Positions 8,845-64,000 of a stretch of 64,000 nucleotides of DNA are shown here, piece after piece. The number at the start of each line of letters is the position of its first letter. The first letter of the stretch is position 1. The position numbers and the translations under genes are program-made. Under the pieces are notes generated by a model. It was not told the DNA's origin, did no database searches, and saw only the letters and a program-made list of their open reading frames with translations. Location of the stretch: the IMG/VR virus record IMGVR_UViG_3300035703_000008, positions 1 to 64,000 of that record; one strand, given 5' to 3'.

Positions 8845-10122
8845 ATGAACTATAAAGTAGCAGATATCTCACTGGCCGCTTGGGGCCATCGCGAAATCGC
8901 CATTGCCGAGCACGAAATGCCGGGTCTCATGGCCATCCAGAGCAAGTACCAAGGTCAGCTGCCTTTAAAGGGCGCTCGAATCGTGGGCAGCCTGCACATG
9001 ACCATCCAGACAGCGGTACTGATCAAAGTTCTAGTGGCGCTCGGTGCCGAAGTGCGCTGGAGTTCCTGCAACATCTTCTCTACGCAGGACCATGCTGCTG
9101 CAGCCATTGCTGACCTTGGCATCCCTGTGTTTGCTTGGAAAGGCGAAACCGAAGAAGAATACTGGTGGTGCATCGATCAGACCATCGAGGGCTGGCAGCC
9201 CAACATGATCCTCGACGACGGTCACGATCTCACCGATCGTATCATCACCCGGTATCCTGATCTCGTGCCTGGCATCCTGGGAGTCAGCGAAGAAACCACC
9301 ACAGGTATCCTGCGTCTCAGAGAAAAGGCCGCTGCTGGTCAACTACCATTTCCAGCCTTCAACGTCAACGACTCAGTGACCAAGTCAAAGTTTGACAACC
9401 TCTACGGCTGCCGTGAAAGTCTCGTGGATGGCATCAAGCGTGCCACCGATGTCATGATCGCCGGCAAAGTGGCCGTGGTCTGCGGATTTGGTGATGTGGG
9501 CAAAGGATCCGCTGCTGCCTTGCGCACGCTCAGTGCCCAGGTCTGGGTCACTGAAAGCGATCCCATCTGCGCCCTGCAGGCCGCCATGGAAGGCTATCGT
9601 GTTGTGACCATGGACTGGGCCGCTGACAAGGCCGACATCTTTGTCACAGCCACCGGCAACATCAATGTGATCACACGTGCCCACATGGATGTGATGAAGC
9701 ACAACGCCATCGTATGCAACATCGGCCACTTCGACAACGAAATTGATGTGGCTGCCCTCGATGATCTTGCCTGGGAAGAGATCAAGCCCCAAGTGGATCA
9801 CATCTGCTGGCCTGATGGCAAAAGAATCATTCTCTTGGCCCGAGGACGCTTGGTAAACCTGGGCTGCGCTACAGGACATCCTAGTTTCGTGATGTCAAAT
9901 TCGTTTACCAATCAAGTGTTGGCACAGATCGAGCTGTATCAGAATCATAGAGACTACGATTCAGGAGCAGTGTATGTGTTGCCTAAACGACTCGACGAGG
10001 AAGTAGCTCGTTTGCATCTTGCACAGATTGGTGCCCAGCTCACCGAGTTGACTCCGGCACAGGCCGAATACATCAGTGTGCCTGTGGAAGGCCCTTACAA
10101 GCCCGACGCATATAGATACTAA
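8845..10122 (+). CDS. ahcY: S-adenosylhomocysteine hydrolase
   Basis: [56 protein letters not shown]. Confidence 0.97.
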
Positions 10123-23738: not shown

Positions 23739-24247
23739 ATCGCCCAGGGCACGAGCAGATAGCATTTTTCTGGGGCAACGAAGTCGAGCACACTCCCATG
23801 CTGGGACGACCCACCTTGTTTGTGGTAGGCTTGCGCAGCGTGTCAGACATCGAGCGAGAATTGGAAAAACGACCCGATGTCGAGCACATCTTTTTTGGAG
23901 CCAACGACAGTTATCTCCCCAGTGACTGGAAAGATCACCAGGCCTGGGAAAGCATGATCGCTACATTCCTGGATCGTGGCCATTGGTGCAGTCTGGATAT
24001 TCCATTCCGGTATGTGGAAGAGTTTCATGAAGGTGGTCTATGTGAACACCATCGTTTCATTCCCATCATCAAAGTTCCGATCCCTTACTCGGGACTCTGG
24101 AACTACAATACCTGTGTCAAGATCGACGATCGAGACTTCGCTGCCACCAATCCCGGTGTGTGGGTACATCAACTCCATGCGCTCATGAGTCGTGATCGAT
24201 TCACCGATTGGAGCCAATATAGCAAGGATGCCCCAGTCAATGACTGA
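23735..24247 (+). CDS. hypothetical protein in the deazaguanine neighbourhood
   Basis: GNEVEHTP..G.PTLFV and DF.ATNPGVW; core-like codon usage. Confidence 0.65.
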   Translation: MNRPGHEQIAFFWGNEVEHTPMLGRPTLFVVGLRSVSDIERELEKRPDVEHIFFGANDSYLPSDWKDHQAWESMIATFLDRGHWCSLDIPFRYVEEFHEGGLCEHHRFIPIIKVPIPYSGLWNYNTCVKIDDRDFAATNPGVWVHQLHALMSRDRFTDWSQYSKDAPVND

Positions 24248-25424
24248 CGATCGGTACTGGAACCAATCTTCTTTTTGCCCAGTGGCCTGGCGTGGGATCT
24301 ATGTAGATCCTGAAGGAAAAGTTGACAACTGTTGTATTTCATCCAATCGGTTGGGCAATCTTCATGATTCACCTATTGGGGAGATAGTGCAAGGTCGACG
24401 GTTCTTGGAAATAAGACAATCCATGATCGACGGCAACATCCCTCAGGGCTGTCAGGTATGCTACAATGGAGAATCTACAAATCTTCGGAGAGCATTTTTA
24501 GACAAGTTTTCCAAATACGATCGAGACATCTACGACGATGTTCGCGGATTTCGTCTTAATTATCTAGACCTAAGATGGAGTAATACCTGTAATTCTGCCT
24601 GTGTTTATTGTGGTCCAAAATTGAGTTCGAAGATCGCAGCCGAACAAGGAATAGAAATACGAAAAGACTCTGCAAACATAGATCGAACCAAGCAGTTTGT
24701 TGCTGATAACATCCACGACGTCAAGGATATCTATCTAGCCGGCGGAGAGCCTTTGCTGATAAAAGAAAACGAATGGTTATTGTCCTTGTTGCTAGAAAAA
24801 GGAATAGCACCGAGGATCCTGGTCAATACCAATCTCAGCCAAATTGACAACCGTGTCTTTGATCTACTCTGCCAATTCAACAATGTGCATTGGTTGATCA
24901 GTGGCGAGCATGTGGGAGAACACTATGAATACATCAGATATGGTAGTTCCTGGTCGCAGTTTGAAAAAAACGTTGATCATCTCTTAGAAAAGACAGTCCC
25001 GCTTGGTCATAGGTACGAATTTAATTTGGTATATTTTTTATTGAATTTGCAAGGGTTTTGGCAATACCTTGACTGGCTTAAGAGTAAAAAGATACCCGAT
25101 ATGGTGGTGCATCCGGCTTGGATCAGCAATGGTGTCATTGATCCACTGGATCCAAGGCGGGTACCCGAATCGTATCAACATCTCATACTAGAAAACATAC
25201 AGAAAAGATTGGAAAATGGAGATCATTGGGATAGGCAATTAGCACAACATCTGCTAAACTGTTGGCAAGAGACACAACGATACCCTAACCCCATATGGAG
25301 TTGTCGGACCAAATTGGCTTCGCTGGACAAGTCTAGAAATCTCAACAGCAAAAAATTATGGCCCGAAATCTGGGCCATGTTTGACCAACTAGCAAAAGAA
25401 TGGAAAGAAAATGAATCAAGATGA
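24240..25424 (+). CDS. radical SAM protein (Twitch/SPASM-like)
   Basis: CNSACVYC, AGGEP, NTN; N-terminal C..CC..CQVC. Confidence 0.9.
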   Translation: MTDDRYWNQSSFCPVAWRGIYVDPEGKVDNCCISSNRLGNLHDSPIGEIVQGRRFLEIRQSMIDGNIPQGCQVCYNGESTNLRRAFLDKFSKYDRDIYDDVRGFRLNYLDLRWSNTCNSACVYCGPKLSSKIAAEQGIEIRKDSANIDRTKQFVADNIHDVKDIYLAGGEPLLIKENEWLLSLLLEKGIAPRILVNTNLSQIDNRVFDLLCQFNNVHWLISGEHVGEHYEYIRYGSSWSQFEKNVDHLLEKTVPLGHRYEFNLVYFLLNLQGFWQYLDWLKSKKIPDMVVHPAWISNGVIDPLDPRRVPESYQHLILENIQKRLENGDHWDRQLAQHLLNCWQETQRYPNPIWSCRTKLASLDKSRNLNSKKLWPEIWAMFDQLAKEWKENESR

Positions 25425-54416: not shown

Positions 54417-54617
54417 ATGAACCAATGGCTTCAGGCCAACATAGATGCCCTCACTCACTTGGGCATCTATGCTCTCATCGCTTACATGATCTTCGTGATC
54501 GTGATGATATGCCGCGAGAGTGGTGTGCCCAGGTCTGGAGTGATCTGGGTCTTCATCGCCTTGGGCGGAGGATTTACTGGATGGATAGTCAAAGACATCA
54601 TCCAGTGGTTTTTATAG
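54417..54617 (+). CDS. small membrane protein with two hydrophobic segments
   Basis: Two hydrophobic stretches; directly follows ahpC. Confidence 0.55.
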
Positions 54618-54625
54618 GACGAAAA

Positions 54626-55834
54626 ATGAATACCCCGATTTACCTCGACTACTCCGCAACGACCCCTATTGATCCACGGGTTGTGGACGCCATGCTGCCG
54701 TTCCTGCGCCAGGACTTCGGTAATCCAGCCTCGCGCAGCCATGCCTTTGGTTGGCGAGCTGAGGAGGCTGTTGAAGCTGCGCGCCAACAAGTTGCCGATT
54801 TGGTGAACTGCGACGCAAAGGAACTCGTCTGGACCTCTGGCGCTACCGAGTCGATCAACCTCGCACTCAAGGGCGCTGCCCACTTCTACAAAGACAAAGG
54901 CCAACACATCATTTCGGTCAAGACCGAACACAAGGCAACGCTAGACACCTGCCGTGAACTCGAGCGCGAAGGCTATGCGCTCACACTCCTCGATGTGCAA
55001 GAGGATGGCCTCATCGACCTGGCCGCGCTCGAGGCTGCCATGCGTCCCGACACCATCCTGGTCTCGGTCATGCTGGTTAATAACGAGATCGGTGTCATTC
55101 AAGATGTGCAAGCCATTGGTGAGCTCTGTCGGGCGCGCGGCATTATTTTTCACATCGATGCCGCCCAGGCGACCGGCAAGGTTGCGATCGACCTCGCTTC
55201 ACTGAAGTGCGACCTCATGTCTTTTTCGGCTCACAAAACCTATGGCCCCAAAGGGATTGGGGCGCTGTTTGTCCGTCGAAAGCCACGCGTGCGGCTTGAG
55301 CCACTGATTCACGGGGGCGGGCATGAGCGTGGCATGCGCTCTGGAACCCTTCCCACCCATCAAATTGTTGGCATGGGTGAGGCTTTTCGCCTCGCTCAGC
55401 TCGAGATGTCTACCGAGAACGAGCGCATTCGAGCCCTTCGCGATCGGCTGTGGGCAGGTCTCTCAGAAATGGAAGCGGTGTACCTGAATGGAGACCTCGA
55501 CCAGCGAGTGCCGCACAACCTCAATGTCAGCTTCAATTATGTCGAGGGCGAGTCGCTACTCATGGCTGTGAAGGACATCGCTGTCTCATCCGGATCAGCC
55601 TGCACCAGTGCCAGCCTCGAGCCCTCGTATGTCTTGCGTGCCCTTGGCCGCAGCGATGAGCTGGCGCACTCATCCATTCGCTTTTCGGTGGGGCGCTTTA
55701 CCACCACGGAAGAGGTCGACTTCACCATTGCGCTCATGAAAGACCGGGTGGCCAAATTGCGCGAGATGTCTCCCTTGTGGGAGCTCGTGCACGAGGGAAT
55801 CGACCTCAACACCATTCAATGGGCAGCACACTAA
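54626..55834 (+). CDS. iscS: cysteine desulfurase
   Basis: [33 protein letters not shown] end. Confidence 0.97.
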
Positions 55835-55844
55835 AGGATAAAAT

Positions 55845-56474
55845 ATGTTAGAAACCATCTGTGACACCATGCTTGAAGCTTACCGACGCAACTGGATCAC
55901 CAGCCGCGACGGCAATGTTTCGATACGTCATCATGACCGTGACCATTTCTACATCACTCCTTCGGGCGTGCGAAAACAAACTTTACAGCCTGATCAATTC
56001 AAGAAGATTGGGCTGATGTCCAATGGCTCCTGGTCTGAGTTGCCTTACACTGATATCAGTGCCCAACTACGACCCAGTGGGGAAATACCATTGCATTTTG
56101 GTCTTCAGAAGATGATGGGACAGCATGGGCATGATGTGAGAGTGGTCATGCATTTCCATCCCACCTATTGCGTGGCTGCCATGCATGCTGGCATCGAACT
56201 AGCAGACCTGGCCCAGGATTTCCCTGAACTGAGTCGCTATACTCGGGTCGGCAAGAATGTCGGGGACGTTGCCCCCATCAGCCAGGAACTGGCAGATCAA
56301 TGCTTTGAGAGTTTTAAACTAAACAGCCAGGGATTCATCGATTATGACATCGTGGGTATCCGAGGGCATGGTGTGGTCAGTATCGATACATCACCATGGC
56401 GCGCATTCGAGCATATCGAGCGCCTGGAACACATCTGCCAGATCGTGCTGGCGTCAGGAAAAATACAATGCTAG
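55845..56474 (+). CDS. class II aldolase/adducin family protein
   Basis: DGNVS, ITPSG, PSGE..LH, HFHP, RGHGVV. Confidence 0.88.
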   Translation: MLETICDTMLEAYRRNWITSRDGNVSIRHHDRDHFYITPSGVRKQTLQPDQFKKIGLMSNGSWSELPYTDISAQLRPSGEIPLHFGLQKMMGQHGHDVRVVMHFHPTYCVAAMHAGIELADLAQDFPELSRYTRVGKNVGDVAPISQELADQCFESFKLNSQGFIDYDIVGIRGHGVVSIDTSPWRAFEHIERLEHICQIVLASGKIQC

Positions 56475-57961
56475 ATACCGCTATCAAACAACAACTAGCT
56501 CAATACCTTGCCTTGATGGAAGGTGACATCACTGTCCGGGTCAGTGCCGGCGACAACCGCGAAATGACCGAACTGGTCAATGAACTGGCTTCAATGTCCT
56601 CGAAGATACATGTAGAGCAGGCCGAATTGCCACACACTCCCAGTTTCCAAATCGGTGACCGCGTGACATTTGCAGGCGTGCCCATGGGACACGAATTCAC
56701 TAGCCTGATCATGGCCTTGCTACAGGTCAGCGGACGCCGGCCCAAGATCGAAGACAAAATCGTCGATCAGATCAAAGCGATCCGCGGCGACTATGAGTTC
56801 ACTACCTACATCAGTCTTTCGTGCCACAACTGTCCGGATGTGGTGCAAGCACTCAACATCATGTCAGTGCTGAATCCCGGTATCCGTCATGTCATGGTGG
56901 ATGGGGCCGAGTTCAAGGCCGAAGTGGAGGCCAAAAACATCATGGCCGTGCCTTATGTGGAACTCAACGGCGAAGCATTTGGATCTGGTCGCATGACCGT
57001 GGAAGAGATCTTGGCTAAAATGGGTAGCCAAGCCGATGTGTCAGACATCGATGGTCGTGAGTATGATGTGTTAGTCATAGGTGGCGGTCCCGCTGGCGCC
57101 AGTGCTGCCGTGTATGCTGCCCGCAAAGGCATCCGCACTGGGATCGTGAGTGAACGCTTTGGCGGACAAGTAATGGACACCATGGGCATCGAGAACCTGA
57201 TCGGTACACGGTACACAGAAGGTCCCAAGCTCGTGGCACAGTTAGAAGAACATGTACGAGAGTATCCCGTAGACATCCACAACCTACAGCGTGCTAAAAG
57301 CATCAAACGCAACAAACTTGTAGAAGTAGAACTGGAGTCAGGTGCCACGCTACGATCAAAGACTGTGATCATCGCCACAGGTGCCCGCTGGCGTAATCTC
57401 GGCGTGCCCGGTGAGGCTGAATTCCGGAACCGCGGTGTTGCCTACTGTCCGCACTGCGACGGTCCTTTGTTCAAAGGCCGGCATGTTGCTGTGATAGGTG
57501 GTGGCAACTCGGGAGTTGAAGCAGCCATTGACCTCGCCGGCATCGTGAGTCATGTCACTGTGTTCGAATTCATGCCAGACCTCAAGGCCGACGCTGTGCT
57601 ACAGCAACGACTCTTCAGCCTACCCAACGTCACTGTATTAAAGAATGTGCAGGTCACTGAGATCCTAGGAGATCAACGAGTCATGGGCATGACCTATCAA
57701 CAACGCGACACCGGTGAGGTCAAACAGATCGATCTAGCCGGTGTGTTTGTGCAGATTGGTCTGGTGCCCAATACCGAGTTTGTGGACGTGGACAAGGATC
57801 GTTTTGGCCAGATCGTTGTTGATTCCCACGGTGCCACATCAATGCCCGGTGTGTTTGCTGCCGGCGATTGCACCACCGAGCCCTACAAGCAGATCATCAT
57901 CTCAATGGGTGCTGGTGCTGGTGCTGCCTTGGGTGCGTTTGATTACATGATCCGCAACTAA
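56468..57961 (+). CDS. ahpF: alkyl hydroperoxide reductase F
   Basis: CHNCPDVV, GGGPAG, CPHCDGP, GGGNSG. Confidence 0.95.
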   Translation: MLDTAIKQQLAQYLALMEGDITVRVSAGDNREMTELVNELASMSSKIHVEQAELPHTPSFQIGDRVTFAGVPMGHEFTSLIMALLQVSGRRPKIEDKIVDQIKAIRGDYEFTTYISLSCHNCPDVVQALNIMSVLNPGIRHVMVDGAEFKAEVEAKNIMAVPYVELNGEAFGSGRMTVEEILAKMGSQADVSDIDGREYDVLVIGGGPAGASAAVYAARKGIRTGIVSERFGGQVMDTMGIENLIGTRYTEGPKLVAQLEEHVREYPVDIHNLQRAKSIKRNKLVEVELESGATLRSKTVIIATGARWRNLGVPGEAEFRNRGVAYCPHCDGPLFKGRHVAVIGGGNSGVEAAIDLAGIVSHVTVFEFMPDLKADAVLQQRLFSLPNVTVLKNVQVTEILGDQRVMGMTYQQRDTGEVKQIDLAGVFVQIGLVPNTEFVDVDKDRFGQIVVDSHGATSMPGVFAAGDCTTEPYKQIIISMGAGAGAALGAFDYMIRN

Positions 57962-60129: not shown

Positions 60130-60212
60130 GGATGACGGGCGGCATTGGCGACCGCAGCGGACTGTAAATCCGTGCCTTCGGGAACGGGGTTCGAATCCCT
60201 GGTCATCCACCA
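60130..60212 (+). tRNA. tRNA-Tyr (GTA)
   Basis: Cloverleaf, long variable arm, CCA. Confidence 0.88.
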
Positions 60213-60326
60213 AGATGCACAGCGTCGCTCTACGCTGTGGCAGGACGGCCTCTCGATGCTAGCCACGAAGCCTCTCAAACTGCGACTAGAGCTCTACTTG
60301 CAAGGTTGAGCATAGCACCATTTCAT

Positions 60327-60401
60327 GCACCGTTCGTCTATCGGTTAGGACACATCCCTTTCACGGATGGAAGAGGAGTTCGATTCTCCTACGGTGTACC
60401 A
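60327..60401 (+). tRNA. tRNA-Glu (TTC)
   Basis: Cloverleaf, CCA. Confidence 0.92.
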
Positions 60402-60443
60402 TTTTAGGTTAGTTTGCTAAATAAAGTAAAGGAAAACTAACCA

Positions 60444-60887
60444 ATGGCATTAGGAACTTGTAAAACCTGTAGTAAAGAGTTTAGATTCTTCGGAAGTCAA
60501 TCATCGGGTCAATTCTGTTCGAGAGAATGCACCCACGATTACAGAACTAAACTGATTATGGAAAGCGGTAAAGGTAATAAGACCAATGCTGCAACATATT
60601 TGCGAAGATTTGTAAAATACGAATGTTCTTATTGTGGAATCAGTAATTGGCAAGGAAAGCCAATCTCACTGCAAATCGATCACATAGACGGAAACAATAA
60701 AAATAATACAATCGAAAACATAAGATGGTTATGCCCAAATTGTCATAGTCAAACTCCAACTTGGGGATTTAAAAATGCTAGTGAATCCTCGAAACAGGCA
60801 AGCCAACAAGGAGCAAAAAAAGGCAACCAAAAAAATCATCTAAACAATAAATCTTGTCTATCGATAGCAGATTTAGAAAGGTTGTAA
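60444..60887 (+). CDS. HNH homing endonuclease
   Basis: CSYC, LQIDHIDGN..NN..EN.RWLCPNCH; AT-rich. Confidence 0.9.
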   Translation: MALGTCKTCSKEFRFFGSQSSGQFCSRECTHDYRTKLIMESGKGNKTNAATYLRRFVKYECSYCGISNWQGKPISLQIDHIDGNNKNNTIENIRWLCPNCHSQTPTWGFKNASESSKQASQQGAKKGNQKNHLNNKSCLSIADLERL

Positions 60888-60914
60888 GGGGTTCGATTCC
60901 CCTACGGTGTACCA
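60856..60914 (+). pseudogene. remnant second copy of tRNA-Glu (T arm, acceptor 3' strand, CCA)
   Basis: AGGGGTTCGATTCCCCTACGGTGTACCA versus AGGAGTTCGATTCTCCTACGGTGTACCA; GTCTATCG D-arm fragment. Confidence 0.8.
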
Positions 60915-60938
60915 TATATACAGAGCAAGGAGAAAGCC

Positions 60939-61121
60939 ATGCTCACAGGTTGGTTTCTGGTAGTGATGTTGTCCACGGTGGATCGATATCAGATCATCGG
61001 GCTCTATGCCACCGAACAGCACTGCCTCAAGGCACGAGAAAAATTGATGGTACATGTGTATCGTCAAGAACAGCGTGGCATGGAGTGTGTGTCGGTGGAA
61101 CAAGCCAGGCGTTGGAAATAA
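60939..61121 (+). CDS. small protein with hydrophobic N-terminus and two Cys
   Basis: AAGGAG RBS. Confidence 0.6.
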   Translation: MLTGWFLVVMLSTVDRYQIIGLYATEQHCLKAREKLMVHVYRQEQRGMECVSVEQARRWK

Positions 61122-61125
61122 CTGT

Positions 61126-61200
61126 CGCGGGATGGAGAAGAGGCAACTCGCCAGCCTCATAAGCTGGAGATCGCAGGTTCGATTCCTGCTCCCGCTACCA
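61126..61200 (+). tRNA. tRNA-Met (CAT), initiator-like
   Basis: C1:U72 mismatch, CGCGGG start, CCA. Confidence 0.85.
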
Positions 61201-61209
61201 TATAAATAC

Positions 61210-61283
61210 GCGGCGGTCGTATAATGGTAATACCTTAGCCTTCCAAGCTAAAGCCAGGGGTTCGATTCCCCTTCGCCGCTCCA
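61210..61283 (+). tRNA. tRNA-Gly (TCC)
   Basis: Cloverleaf, U73, CCA. Confidence 0.92.
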
Positions 61284-61291
61284 AGTTTTTT

Positions 61292-61367
61292 TGACCGAAA
61301 CGCACAACGGTGTGCGGCCGGACTGTTAATCCGTGTGAGTCAGGTTCGATCCCTGATCGGTCAGCCA
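61292..61367 (+). tRNA. tRNA-Asn (GTT)
   Basis: Cloverleaf with atypical D arm, G73, CCA. Confidence 0.82.
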
Positions 61368-61374
61368 AGATCAT

Positions 61375-61448
61375 TCCGGCGTGGTATAGTGGCATTACAG
61401 CGGTCTCCAAAACCGTTAAGGGGAGTTCGATTCTCTCCGCCGGAGCCA
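61375..61448 (+). tRNA. tRNA-Trp (CCA)
   Basis: Cloverleaf, CCA. Confidence 0.9.
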
Positions 61449-61453
61449 AACAT

Positions 61454-61531
61454 GCAACGATGGCAGAGTGGTCCAATGCACGGGCCTGCAAAACCCGAAA
61501 GTCGCTGGTTCGAATCCAGCTCGTTGCTCCA
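61454..61531 (+). tRNA. tRNA-Cys (GCA)
   Basis: Cloverleaf, U73, CCA. Confidence 0.9.
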
Positions 61532-61558
61532 CAAAAAAACACAAGAAAGGAGGCGATG

Positions 61559-62164
61559 ATGCCAGCAGTATTTCTAGTCAGCGACACGCATTTTGGTCAT
61601 GCCGGCGTGTGTCGCTTCACAAGATCGGATGGTGTGACCAAACTGCGTCCCTGGGACGACGCCGCGGAGATGGATGAAGCCATGATCCGGGCCTGGAACG
61701 AGCGTGTGCGGCCTAACGACAAAGTCTATCACCTAGGCGATGTTGTGATCAATCGCAAATCATTGACGACATTGGCTCGTCTGAATGGCGACAAAGTGCT
61801 CATCCGTGGCAATCACGACATCTTCAAAGATGAGGATTACGCTCCTTACTTCAGGAGCATCCGTGCTTACCATGTCATGAACGGCATGATCCTTAGCCAT
61901 ATCCCTGTTCACGAAGCCAGCCTGGGTCGATTTGGTGTCAACATCCACGGACACTTGCATGCCAACCGAGTGACGCGAGCTAGGGGTGTCAATGCCCGGT
62001 CTGGAGAAATCCAGTACACCGACGAGATTGACCCCAGATACCATTGCGTGTGCGTGGAACAGACTCCGGACTTTGCTCCCATCCTTTTCGAAGACGTGAT
62101 CAAGAGGATCGAAGCCGAAGGCGGTCAAATAGGGTTCCGCAACGGCAATGGTCCGGTGATGTAG
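61559..62164 (+). CDS. calcineurin-like metallophosphoesterase
   Basis: SDTHFGH, HLGD, GNHD, SH.P, HGHLH; AAGGAGG RBS. Confidence 0.9.
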   Translation: MPAVFLVSDTHFGHAGVCRFTRSDGVTKLRPWDDAAEMDEAMIRAWNERVRPNDKVYHLGDVVINRKSLTTLARLNGDKVLIRGNHDIFKDEDYAPYFRSIRAYHVMNGMILSHIPVHEASLGRFGVNIHGHLHANRVTRARGVNARSGEIQYTDEIDPRYHCVCVEQTPDFAPILFEDVIKRIEAEGGQIGFRNGNGPVM

Positions 62165-62167
62165 ATT

Positions 62168-62243
62168 CCGACCGTAGCTCAGTGGATAGAGCATCTGCCT
62201 TCTAAGCAGAGAGTCGCAGGTTCGATTCCTGCCGGTCGGGCCA
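62168..62243 (+). tRNA. tRNA-Arg (TCT)
   Basis: Cloverleaf, CCA. Confidence 0.93.
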
Positions 62244-62461
62244 GTAAAAAGCATATTGCTACAAGTGCAAACAGATTTCGAGACGATGTCATATAATAAT
62301 ACATGCGTTCAAAATCTGTCGTTCCTGTTGTTTTGCTCATACTCTTTGCCTTGGCTCTGATCGCTGTCGGCGAAGTCCTGGAGTGTGTGATGTTGATCAA
62401 TCCCTATGAGACCTGGTGCGATTGATTTTGATCCACTGCCACACAAAGTTTAAATATCCAT

Positions 62462-63202
62462 ATGGCCACTTATACTCGTCAAACCGTTACCCATGTGCAT
62501 CACTGGAGTGATCGCACCTTTACCTTTCGTTGCACACGTGATCGGTCATTCCGATTCGCTGCCGGTGAATTCGTCATGATCGGACTCGAAGTCGAGGGTC
62601 GGGCCGTGCTGCGTGCCTATTCAGTGACCTCGGCGCCCTGGGAAGAAGAACTGGAGTTCCTGTCGATCAAGATCGCCGACGGCGAACTCACCAGCCGACT
62701 ACAACACATACAAGTGGGCGATACCGTGTTGATCGGCGAACGTGCCACCGGTACGTTAAGGAACGAAGCTCTTGCGCCCGGGCGCGATCTCTGGATGCTG
62801 GCCACTGGCACAGGACTGGCACCATTCATGAGCCTGATGCGTGACCTTGACACCATCGAGCGTTGGCAGCATCTACATGTGGTACACAGCGTGAGACATG
62901 GCCAGGACTTGGCCTATCACAACCAGCTGGCGGAGGCCTTTGCCGGCGAAGACCTGCATGACTTGGTGGCCGCCAAACTGGTCTATCATCCAGTGGTCAC
63001 TGGCGAGGGTGCAGCTCGCATCGGCGATCAGCTCAAGTCAGGTCAGTTGGAGTTGGATCCTGATCAGGATCGTGTGATGCTGTGCGGCAATCTCGAGTTC
63101 AATCATGAACTGGCCGAATGGTGCCGCGGTGCAGGCATGACCGAGGGTTTGATGCGTAGGCCTGGTGGCTTCGTGCTGGAACGAGCCTTTGTGGAAAAAT
63201 AA
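62462..63202 (+). CDS. fpr: ferredoxin/flavodoxin-NADP+ reductase
   Basis: RAYS, GELTSRL, ATGTGLAPF, MLCG, ERAFVEK. Confidence 0.92.
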   Translation: MATYTRQTVTHVHHWSDRTFTFRCTRDRSFRFAAGEFVMIGLEVEGRAVLRAYSVTSAPWEEELEFLSIKIADGELTSRLQHIQVGDTVLIGERATGTLRNEALAPGRDLWMLATGTGLAPFMSLMRDLDTIERWQHLHVVHSVRHGQDLAYHNQLAEAFAGEDLHDLVAAKLVYHPVVTGEGAARIGDQLKSGQLELDPDQDRVMLCGNLEFNHELAEWCRGAGMTEGLMRRPGGFVLERAFVEK

Positions 63203-63213
63203 TAGATCTAGAT

Positions 63214-63287
63214 GCGGGTATGGTTTAATGGTAAAACGAAACCTTGCCAAGGTTTAGTTGCGAGTTCGATTCTCGCTACCCGCTCCA
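63214..63287 (+). tRNA. tRNA-Gly (GCC)
   Basis: Cloverleaf, CCA. Confidence 0.92.
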
Positions 63288-63293
63288 CGCTGG

Positions 63294-63322
63294 TTGACAT
63301 CTAAAACCCGATATTGTATACT
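63294..63322 (+). promoter_or_regulatory. sigma70 promoter
   Basis: TTGACA-17-TATACT. Confidence 0.85.
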
Positions 63323-63332
63323 AACAACAACT

Positions 63333-63423
63333 GGAGACGTGACCGAGAGGCCGAAGGTGCTCCCCTGCTAAGGGAGTATGCGCCAAAAGCGCATCGTGGG
63401 TTCGAATCCCACCGTCTCCGCCA
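63333..63423 (+). tRNA. tRNA-Ser (GCT)
   Basis: Cloverleaf, long variable arm, CCA. Confidence 0.93.
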
Positions 63424-63427
63424 AGAC

Positions 63428-63625
63428 GTGCTGTCTAATCAACAGCTAGTGTGGTCCGCATGTCGAGAAGTGGTGTGATAGCCACAGGACCTTACCATTT
63501 GGAGCAAATGGCGCTGGCAATGCGACAATCCTCCCTGGTCGGGAAGCGGGTGGAAGGCATGCGTGATGGGATTGAGACCGCTCGGTTCTTGATGTGCTAC
63601 AATTACCGCCGCAGGGGGGAAGCAC
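63428..63625 (+). ncRNA. unassigned multi-stem RNA A
   Basis: Closing GTGCT/AGCAC with several internal helices. Confidence 0.55.
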
Positions 63626-63626
63626 C

Positions 63627-63837
63627 TGTTGTCATCAGTGAAGGCGTGAGCGAAAGTATGGCCATGCCCCAACTACCAGGGGAGAGCACCACCCCGAGCT
63701 TCTGCGACTCTGTTATAGAGCGGACCTGATCCTGGCCGGTCAGGATGAGCATGCGGCGGGGGACATTGGCGTTGGATTCATAGTCCAGATAACGTTCGGG
63801 TCTTAAACACAGGGTAGTGCCTTCACCGATGACGATA
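63627..63837 (+). ncRNA. unassigned multi-stem RNA B
   Basis: Long closing stem GTCATCAGTGAAGGC/GCCTTCACCGATGAC. Confidence 0.55.
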
Positions 63838-64000
63838 TCGCCACAGATATCTCGGCATAAAACGATGTCTTTGCTGTGTCTGGGTTAAATATTTTCCTAT
63901 ACGGAGTCAAATCATGGATATATCCATATTACTATTATTGGCAGCAGTGGCAGTGCTTGTATTTTTGTTGAGCAAAAAACAGAACCGTCCGCAAAATCTC

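Follow-up and report, generated by a model that had tools for sequence, protein, structure and literature searches.

A structured non-coding RNA family within the tRNA arrays of large uncultivated phages

The locus

We examined a 64,000-nucleotide stretch (the window) comprising the first 64 kb of the IMG/VR virus record IMGVR_UViG_3300035703_000008, which is 208,932 bp long and estimated to be 60% complete. The family-B DNA polymerase of this phage is 46-50% identical to those of the jumbo phages Sinorhizobium Phosso and Agrobacterium Atu_ph07, and the window carries host-like metabolic genes at 8845-10122, 24192-25424, 54425-55834 and 56396-57961 (S-adenosylhomocysteine hydrolase, a radical SAM/SPASM protein, a cysteine desulfurase-like class-V aminotransferase and an AhpF-like thioredoxin-fused disulfide reductase). 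Positions 60130-63423 hold ten tRNA genes detected by ARAGORN, interleaved at 60444-60887, 61595-62164 and 62462-63202 with an HNH endonuclease, a calcineurin-like metallophosphatase and an FNR-like FAD/NAD oxidoreductase. The last tRNA is tRNA-Ser(GCU) at 63333-63423 (+) (Rfam tRNA, 55.7 bits), with an encoded CCA end at 63421-63423. Between tRNA-Gly and tRNA-Ser, and ending 10 nt before the latter, a near-consensus sigma70-type promoter-like site (63294-63322, +) was read directly from the sequence, with TTGACA at 63294-99, a 17-nt spacer and TATACT at 63317-22; its function is inferred.

Beginning 3 nt after this CCA, the region 63427-63624 (+) encodes a structured RNA. An earlier note, made from the sequence alone, had placed a multi-helix RNA at 63428-63625 and inferred a novel structured RNA or ribozyme co-transcribed with tRNA-Ser. 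The conserved limits obtained here agree with that placement to within one base. The roughly 285 nt that follow (63625-63910) have a GC content of 0.55-0.58, contain no credible ORF, tRNA or family match, and are conserved only in the contig of the closest relative.

Thermodynamics alone would not have revealed the element, as its minimum free energy was no better than that of shuffled sequences on either strand (z-scores of +0.46 on the + strand and -0.07 on the - strand). Rfam 15, searched at gathering scores and at E values up to 10 for the window's region and the elements in nine other loci, returned only tRNAs and noise.

A family of homologous RNAs

Three ORFs overlap the element: 63451-63729 on the + strand (92 aa), and 63439-63672 and 63446-63625 on the - strand (77 and 59 aa). 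None matched a Pfam or PHROG family. The decisive lead came from treating ORF 63451-63729 as a protein, which retrieved 16 "proteins" of 52-118 aa that share only a core of about 55 residues, with unrelated starts, ends and flanks. This is the signature of gene callers tripping over a conserved RNA. The corresponding contigs showed sharp conservation limits at about 63427 and 63624, compensatory changes and, in some copies, an inserted hairpin; in one 162-kb contig the element sits exactly between tRNA-Glu and tRNA-Asp.

To enlarge the family, we gathered loci with an exact, conserved 16-mer, a procedure that biases the set towards close kin and underestimates its diversity. By nhmmer and a covariance model (R1), 87 of these loci, on uncultivated phage contigs, are true homologues scoring 58-216 bits, with the window at 178.9 bits (E 2e-62). 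Members are 109-288 nt long (median 207), the shortest being cut by contig ends. The window's genome and five other carrier genomes, three of them complete at 172-175 kb, each have one copy. Carriers are related to several groups of large phages (PA5oct-like, DLP_6-like and Atu_ph07-like), and runs holding parts of the stretch come from subsurface, freshwater, lake, soil and peat metagenomes. Relatives sought in IMG/VR through the neighboring FNR-like protein gave none.

The element was not found in cultured phages: searches with blastn, using the element and a divergent member against 50,697 INPHARED records, gave nothing, and covariance-model scans of seven whole genomes chosen as the nearest cultured relatives of carrier phages (Phosso, Atu_ph07, PA5oct, DLP_6, BUCT-ZZ01, Xanthomonas X1 and RHph_I1_18) gave no true hit; a 15-bit hit in Atu_ph07 lies antisense inside a CDS. 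No paper containing the conserved 16-mer, and no description of such an RNA, was found in the literature searched.

We next asked whether conservation follows the codon pattern of ORF 63451-63729, the observation that the earlier note said would refute a structured RNA. It does not. Column entropy by codon position is 0.71, 0.72 and 0.60 (Kruskal-Wallis p=0.43), element lengths fall evenly into the three classes modulo 3, 65 of 68 distinct homologues have one or more stops in the homologous frame, and 59 of 68 have no open forward frame at all. The ORF is spurious, and a small protein-coding gene, for which the open frames and the repeated calls by gene callers would otherwise speak, is refuted by these data.

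A fold conserved by covariation

On the model-based alignment of 68 distinct sequences, 97.1% of cells form standard pairs, against 78.2% in shuffles and 31-45% when partners are slid by 1-3 columns. Changes on both sides were observed in 26 of 34 pairs, and none of 500 shuffles reached the observed value on any measure. The fold comprises nine helices, arranged as a 5' domain (P1-P5) and a 3' arm (P6-P9).

The element is preceded by a purine leader, AGA, at 63424-63426, which reads GAA, AGA, AAA or GGA in homologues whether or not a tRNA precedes, and thus belongs to the element. The conserved start CGU is followed by the P1 hairpin (GCUGU/ACAGC, 63430-34/63442-46; loop L1, CUAAUCA), in which all 5 pairs show double-sided changes. 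The P2 hairpin (GUGU/GCAU, 63449-52/63458-61) has double-sided changes in 3 of 4 pairs, with 99% of cells paired. P3 (GUGGU/GCCAC, 63470-74/63481-85; loop L3, GUGAUA) shows double-sided changes in all 4 modeled pairs. P4 (CCAUUU/AAAUGG) lies at 63495-500/63506-11. The P5 mini-hairpin (CGC/GCG, 63512-14/63522-24) carries the 7-nt loop UGGCAAU and is the most conserved block of the family. P5 is invariant by construction in the pattern-derived loci, although it is also invariant in the 16 independently found hits; a T-loop-like reading of its loop (U1...A5) is inference only.

Long-range contacts tie the 5' domain together. L1 AUCA (63438-41) kisses L3 UGAU (63476-79), with at least seven Watson-Crick versions across the family (AUCA/UGAU, UAACG/CGUUA, GUCA/UGAC, UCAU/AUGA, UAAU/AUUA, GCCA/UGGU and UGACU/AGUCA). 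Of a sequence's own loop pairs, 74% give 4 or more bp, against 34% of cross pairs, and mutual-information pairs were also seen. In a pseudoknot (PK1), the P2 loop L2 GGUCC (63453-57) pairs with GGACC just after P3 (63487-91) in four covarying versions, ACCC/GGGU, GUCC/GGAC, ACUC/GAGU and AUCC/GGAU, of which the window's GUCC/GGAC is a minority form. The next four bases, in J3/4, probably pair with the P4 loop (PK2), as GGUU/AACC in most members and in a swapped CC/GG arrangement in the window's subtype. We regard PK2 as tentative, since it rests mostly on conservation rather than covariation.

The 3' domain is closed by P6 (63529-37/63612-20), followed by P7a (63540-41/63610-11), a GGAA bulge (63542-45), P7b (63546-49/63606-09), an internal loop (GUGGAA opposite ACAAUUA) and P8 (63556-61/63593-98). 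Double-sided changes occur in 12 of 15 pairs of helices 6-9, and P6 of the second subtype covaries (UCCC/GGGA against AACC/GGUU). At 63562-63592 the sequence matches a kink-turn consensus, with bulge CGU (63562-64), G63565-A63592 and A63566-G63591 as sheared pairs, and U63567-U63590, such that P8 is the C stem and P9 the NC stem. The bulged strand has G in 48/54 and A in 44/54 sequences, and the opposite strand G in 46/54 and A in 50/54. The pattern P8-NNN-GA-N...N-GA-P8' is present in about 80% of members, and the 3b-3n position switches from U-U (GAU...UGA) to A-G (GAA...GGA). The motif assignment is inferred from sequence. P9 (63568-63589; GGGAUUGAG/CUCGGUUCU) is a terminal hairpin that differs widely in length and sequence between members, with mutual information at its base, and the element ends in a conserved single-stranded tail, AGCA (63621-63624). 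Many members carry one or two extra hairpins of 28-55 nt between PK2 and P4, and P9 arms of up to about 90 nt occur (for instance, homologue loci L003:2909-3135, L007:627-855, L010:3866-4117 and L084:7157-7444). These lineage-specific expansions on a constant core are typical of peripheral elements.

Five of the six helices proposed in the earlier note are confirmed. GCTGT/ACAGC is P1, GTGG/CCAC is P3, CCATTT/AAATGG is P4, TCCTCCCTG/CAGGGGGGA is P6 and GGGATTGAG/CTCGGTTCT is the variable hairpin P9, while GGTCC/GGACC is real but is PK1, involving the loop of a hairpin (P2) that the note did not describe. Its closing helix GTGCT/AGCAC is not supported, as its GCT belongs to P1 and most members read CGTTCC...GAAGCA, which cannot form it. 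Its pseudoknot between CGCAT and ATGCG is likewise not supported, as CGCAT is the 3' strand of P2 and ATGCG is part of the P5 hairpin.

A divergent member of a known family (a reduced RNase P RNA, tmRNA, 6S, SRP RNA or T4 species 1/2 RNA) appears very unlikely. The only trace in Rfam was a weak tmRNA_permuted hit (12.5 bits, E 4.2), and ARAGORN found no tmRNA. By eye, GGGUGGUACC resembles the T-box sequence and GAGAAGUGG resembles RNase P CR-I, but the RNase P-like strand is paired locally in P3, with covariation.

Genomic context and proposed role

Among the 68 distinct copies, 48 have an upstream tRNA on the same strand, and in 33 of these the encoded CCA ends 2-4 nt, most often 3 nt, before the conserved CGU. 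A downstream tRNA is present in 46, and 29 of these tRNAs begin 2-12 nt after the AGCA tail. Of 73 full elements, 46 have a tRNA within 30 nt. The upstream tRNAs differ between lineages (Ser, Gly, Cys, Ala, Met, Tyr, Glu, Pro, Ile, Asn, Asp and Arg). Copies with no tRNA nearby are followed at once by a terminator-like run of 5-8 T (e.g., loci L039, L111, L069, L019, L018, L108 and L009), and some phages therefore seem to make the RNA as its own transcript. The RNA thus behaves as a discrete unit whose ends coincide with tRNA-processing sites or with a terminator. In the window there is no room for a promoter between tRNA-Ser and the element, making co-transcription the natural reading, and the promoter-like site suggests a short tRNA-Ser plus RNA transcription unit inside the array.

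No phage-encoded partner was identified. L7Ae (PF01248) is absent from six carrier genomes in which the controls were detected, although a host protein is not excluded, and the Ro60/TROVE (PF05731) and RtcB (PF01139) proteins expected of Y RNA-like (YrlA) RNPs are absent from five. No neighboring gene family occurs in more than 17 of 87 loci; the commonest are a metallophosphatase (17 of 87), also present in the window's array, and an RNase H-like protein, which looks like synteny among kin. The RNA either works on host components or works alone.

The element represents a genuine, well-supported new family of structured phage RNA of unknown function; we favor, with a probability of about 0.6, the reading that it is a stable, elaborately folded non-coding RNA matured from the tRNA operon. 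In the absence of RNA-level data, we infer that it is transcribed in the window from the promoter-like site together with tRNA-Ser and released by the host's tRNA-maturation nucleases, with trailer cleavage behind the tRNA making its 5' end and, in arrays, RNase P cleavage at the next tRNA making its 3' end. About 30% of copies have no tRNA within reach, so tRNA processing cannot be the only route of release. The RNA may then act in trans during infection, as a scaffold or decoy tied to translation or tRNA-directed host defense, a role proposed for other non-tRNA residents of phage tRNA islands; this proposal rests on analogy alone.

The same context raises the possibility of a self-cleaving ribozyme that cuts at its own 5' edge, between the CCA and the conserved RAA-CGU, and so trims the 3' trailer of the upstream tRNA, as proposed for the HDV-like theta ribozymes of gut phages. 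Theta ribozymes are defined as tRNA-associated when a tRNA 3' end lies within 5 nt of the cleavage site (PMC10879173), and here the gap between the CCA and the conserved start is 2-4 nt in 33 of the 48 copies with an upstream tRNA; the purine leader is conserved even without a tRNA, and a pseudoknotted core is typical of ribozymes. However, nucleotides 4-20 form the local, covarying hairpin P1 rather than the long-range P1 of the HDV fold, and no HDV-like, hatchet, glmS or other ribozyme family matched at E values up to 10. Moreover, only one copy occurs per array of 10-30 tRNAs, next to tRNAs of many identities, about a third of copies have no upstream tRNA, and 170-290 nt is large for trailer trimming. 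We consider this reading unlikely, though not excluded.

A cis-acting riboswitch or attenuator is still less likely. The size and complexity of the RNA, including a k-turn, resemble large riboswitch aptamers, and some copies are followed by a T-run. On the other hand, the downstream neighbor varies (tRNAs of many kinds, unrelated small ORFs or nothing), there is no room for an expression platform, no alternative pairing is conserved, and no riboswitch family matched.

Covariation cannot distinguish intra- from intermolecular pairing, and the L1-L3 kiss could instead join molecules into an RNA-only assembly, as in phi29 pRNA rings or the kissing-loop bridges of ROOL and GOLLD cages. In one subtype (6 distinct loci) both loops are the same near-palindromic GUAGCA, which can pair only as G-C, U-G, A-A, G-U, C-G, and the "tertiary" kissing loops of ROOL and GOLLD, found in the same genomic setting, turned out to be quaternary (PMC12286853). 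This reading is doubtful, as the RNA is 3-4 times smaller than ROOL or GOLLD, and PK1, and probably PK2, already pull P1-P4 into one compact domain, making an intramolecular kiss the simplest reading. Taken together, a new class of catalytic or self-assembling RNA remains a speculative possibility, in which a large ribozyme would act on its own tRNA precursor or on tRNAs in trans, or a compact multimer would be held by L1-L3 kissing, and which diverse large environmental phages would use to secure their tRNA supply or to blunt tRNA-targeting host defenses.

Complex-folded RNAs with pseudoknots, kissing loops and k-turns that are conserved across many lineages have almost always turned out to be ribozymes, riboswitches or cores of RNPs, and few such classes remain unassigned. 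The family also corrects annotation, given that gene callers repeatedly call a false ORF over it.

Comparison with known phage RNAs

Candidate structured RNAs have been catalogued from IMG/VR with the same kind of evidence (Fremin et al. 2023, PMC10690425). Those candidates are 29-151 nt long, and pieces of this RNA may be among the 8,495 unnamed ones; the text of that paper describes no such tRNA-array RNA. The phi29 pRNA is probably of similar size, with two loops whose 4-nt complementarity appears to covary between relatives. It sits at the genome end of small phi29-like phages and works in the packaging motor, whereas the present RNA has no Rfam match and lies in tRNA arrays of phages of 170-350 kb.

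The closest positional analogues are the species 1 and species 2 RNAs of phage T4 (rnaC and rnaD; T4 locus L130:2909-3172), which occupy the same kind of slot at the end of the T4 tRNA array, separated from the neighboring tRNA and from each other by 1-6 nt. They lie next to the homing endonuclease segB, paralleling the HNH gene in the window's array. No sequence or structure similarity was detected, as R1, with filters off, scores at most 3.9 bits (E 0.48) over the T4 locus. The T4 RNAs are shorter, at 139 and 119 nt, and rnaC ends in a tRNA-like T-arm (GGGTTCGAATCCCGG), which this RNA lacks.

GOLLD and ROOL are likewise structured RNAs with pseudoknots and kissing loops, encoded by phages often beside or inside tRNA islands, for which no protein partner and no function is known (PMC12286853). 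The present RNA matches neither Rfam model at any threshold tried, its helices and conserved blocks are unrelated, and it measures 170-290 nt, against roughly 500-800 nt or more for GOLLD and ROOL.
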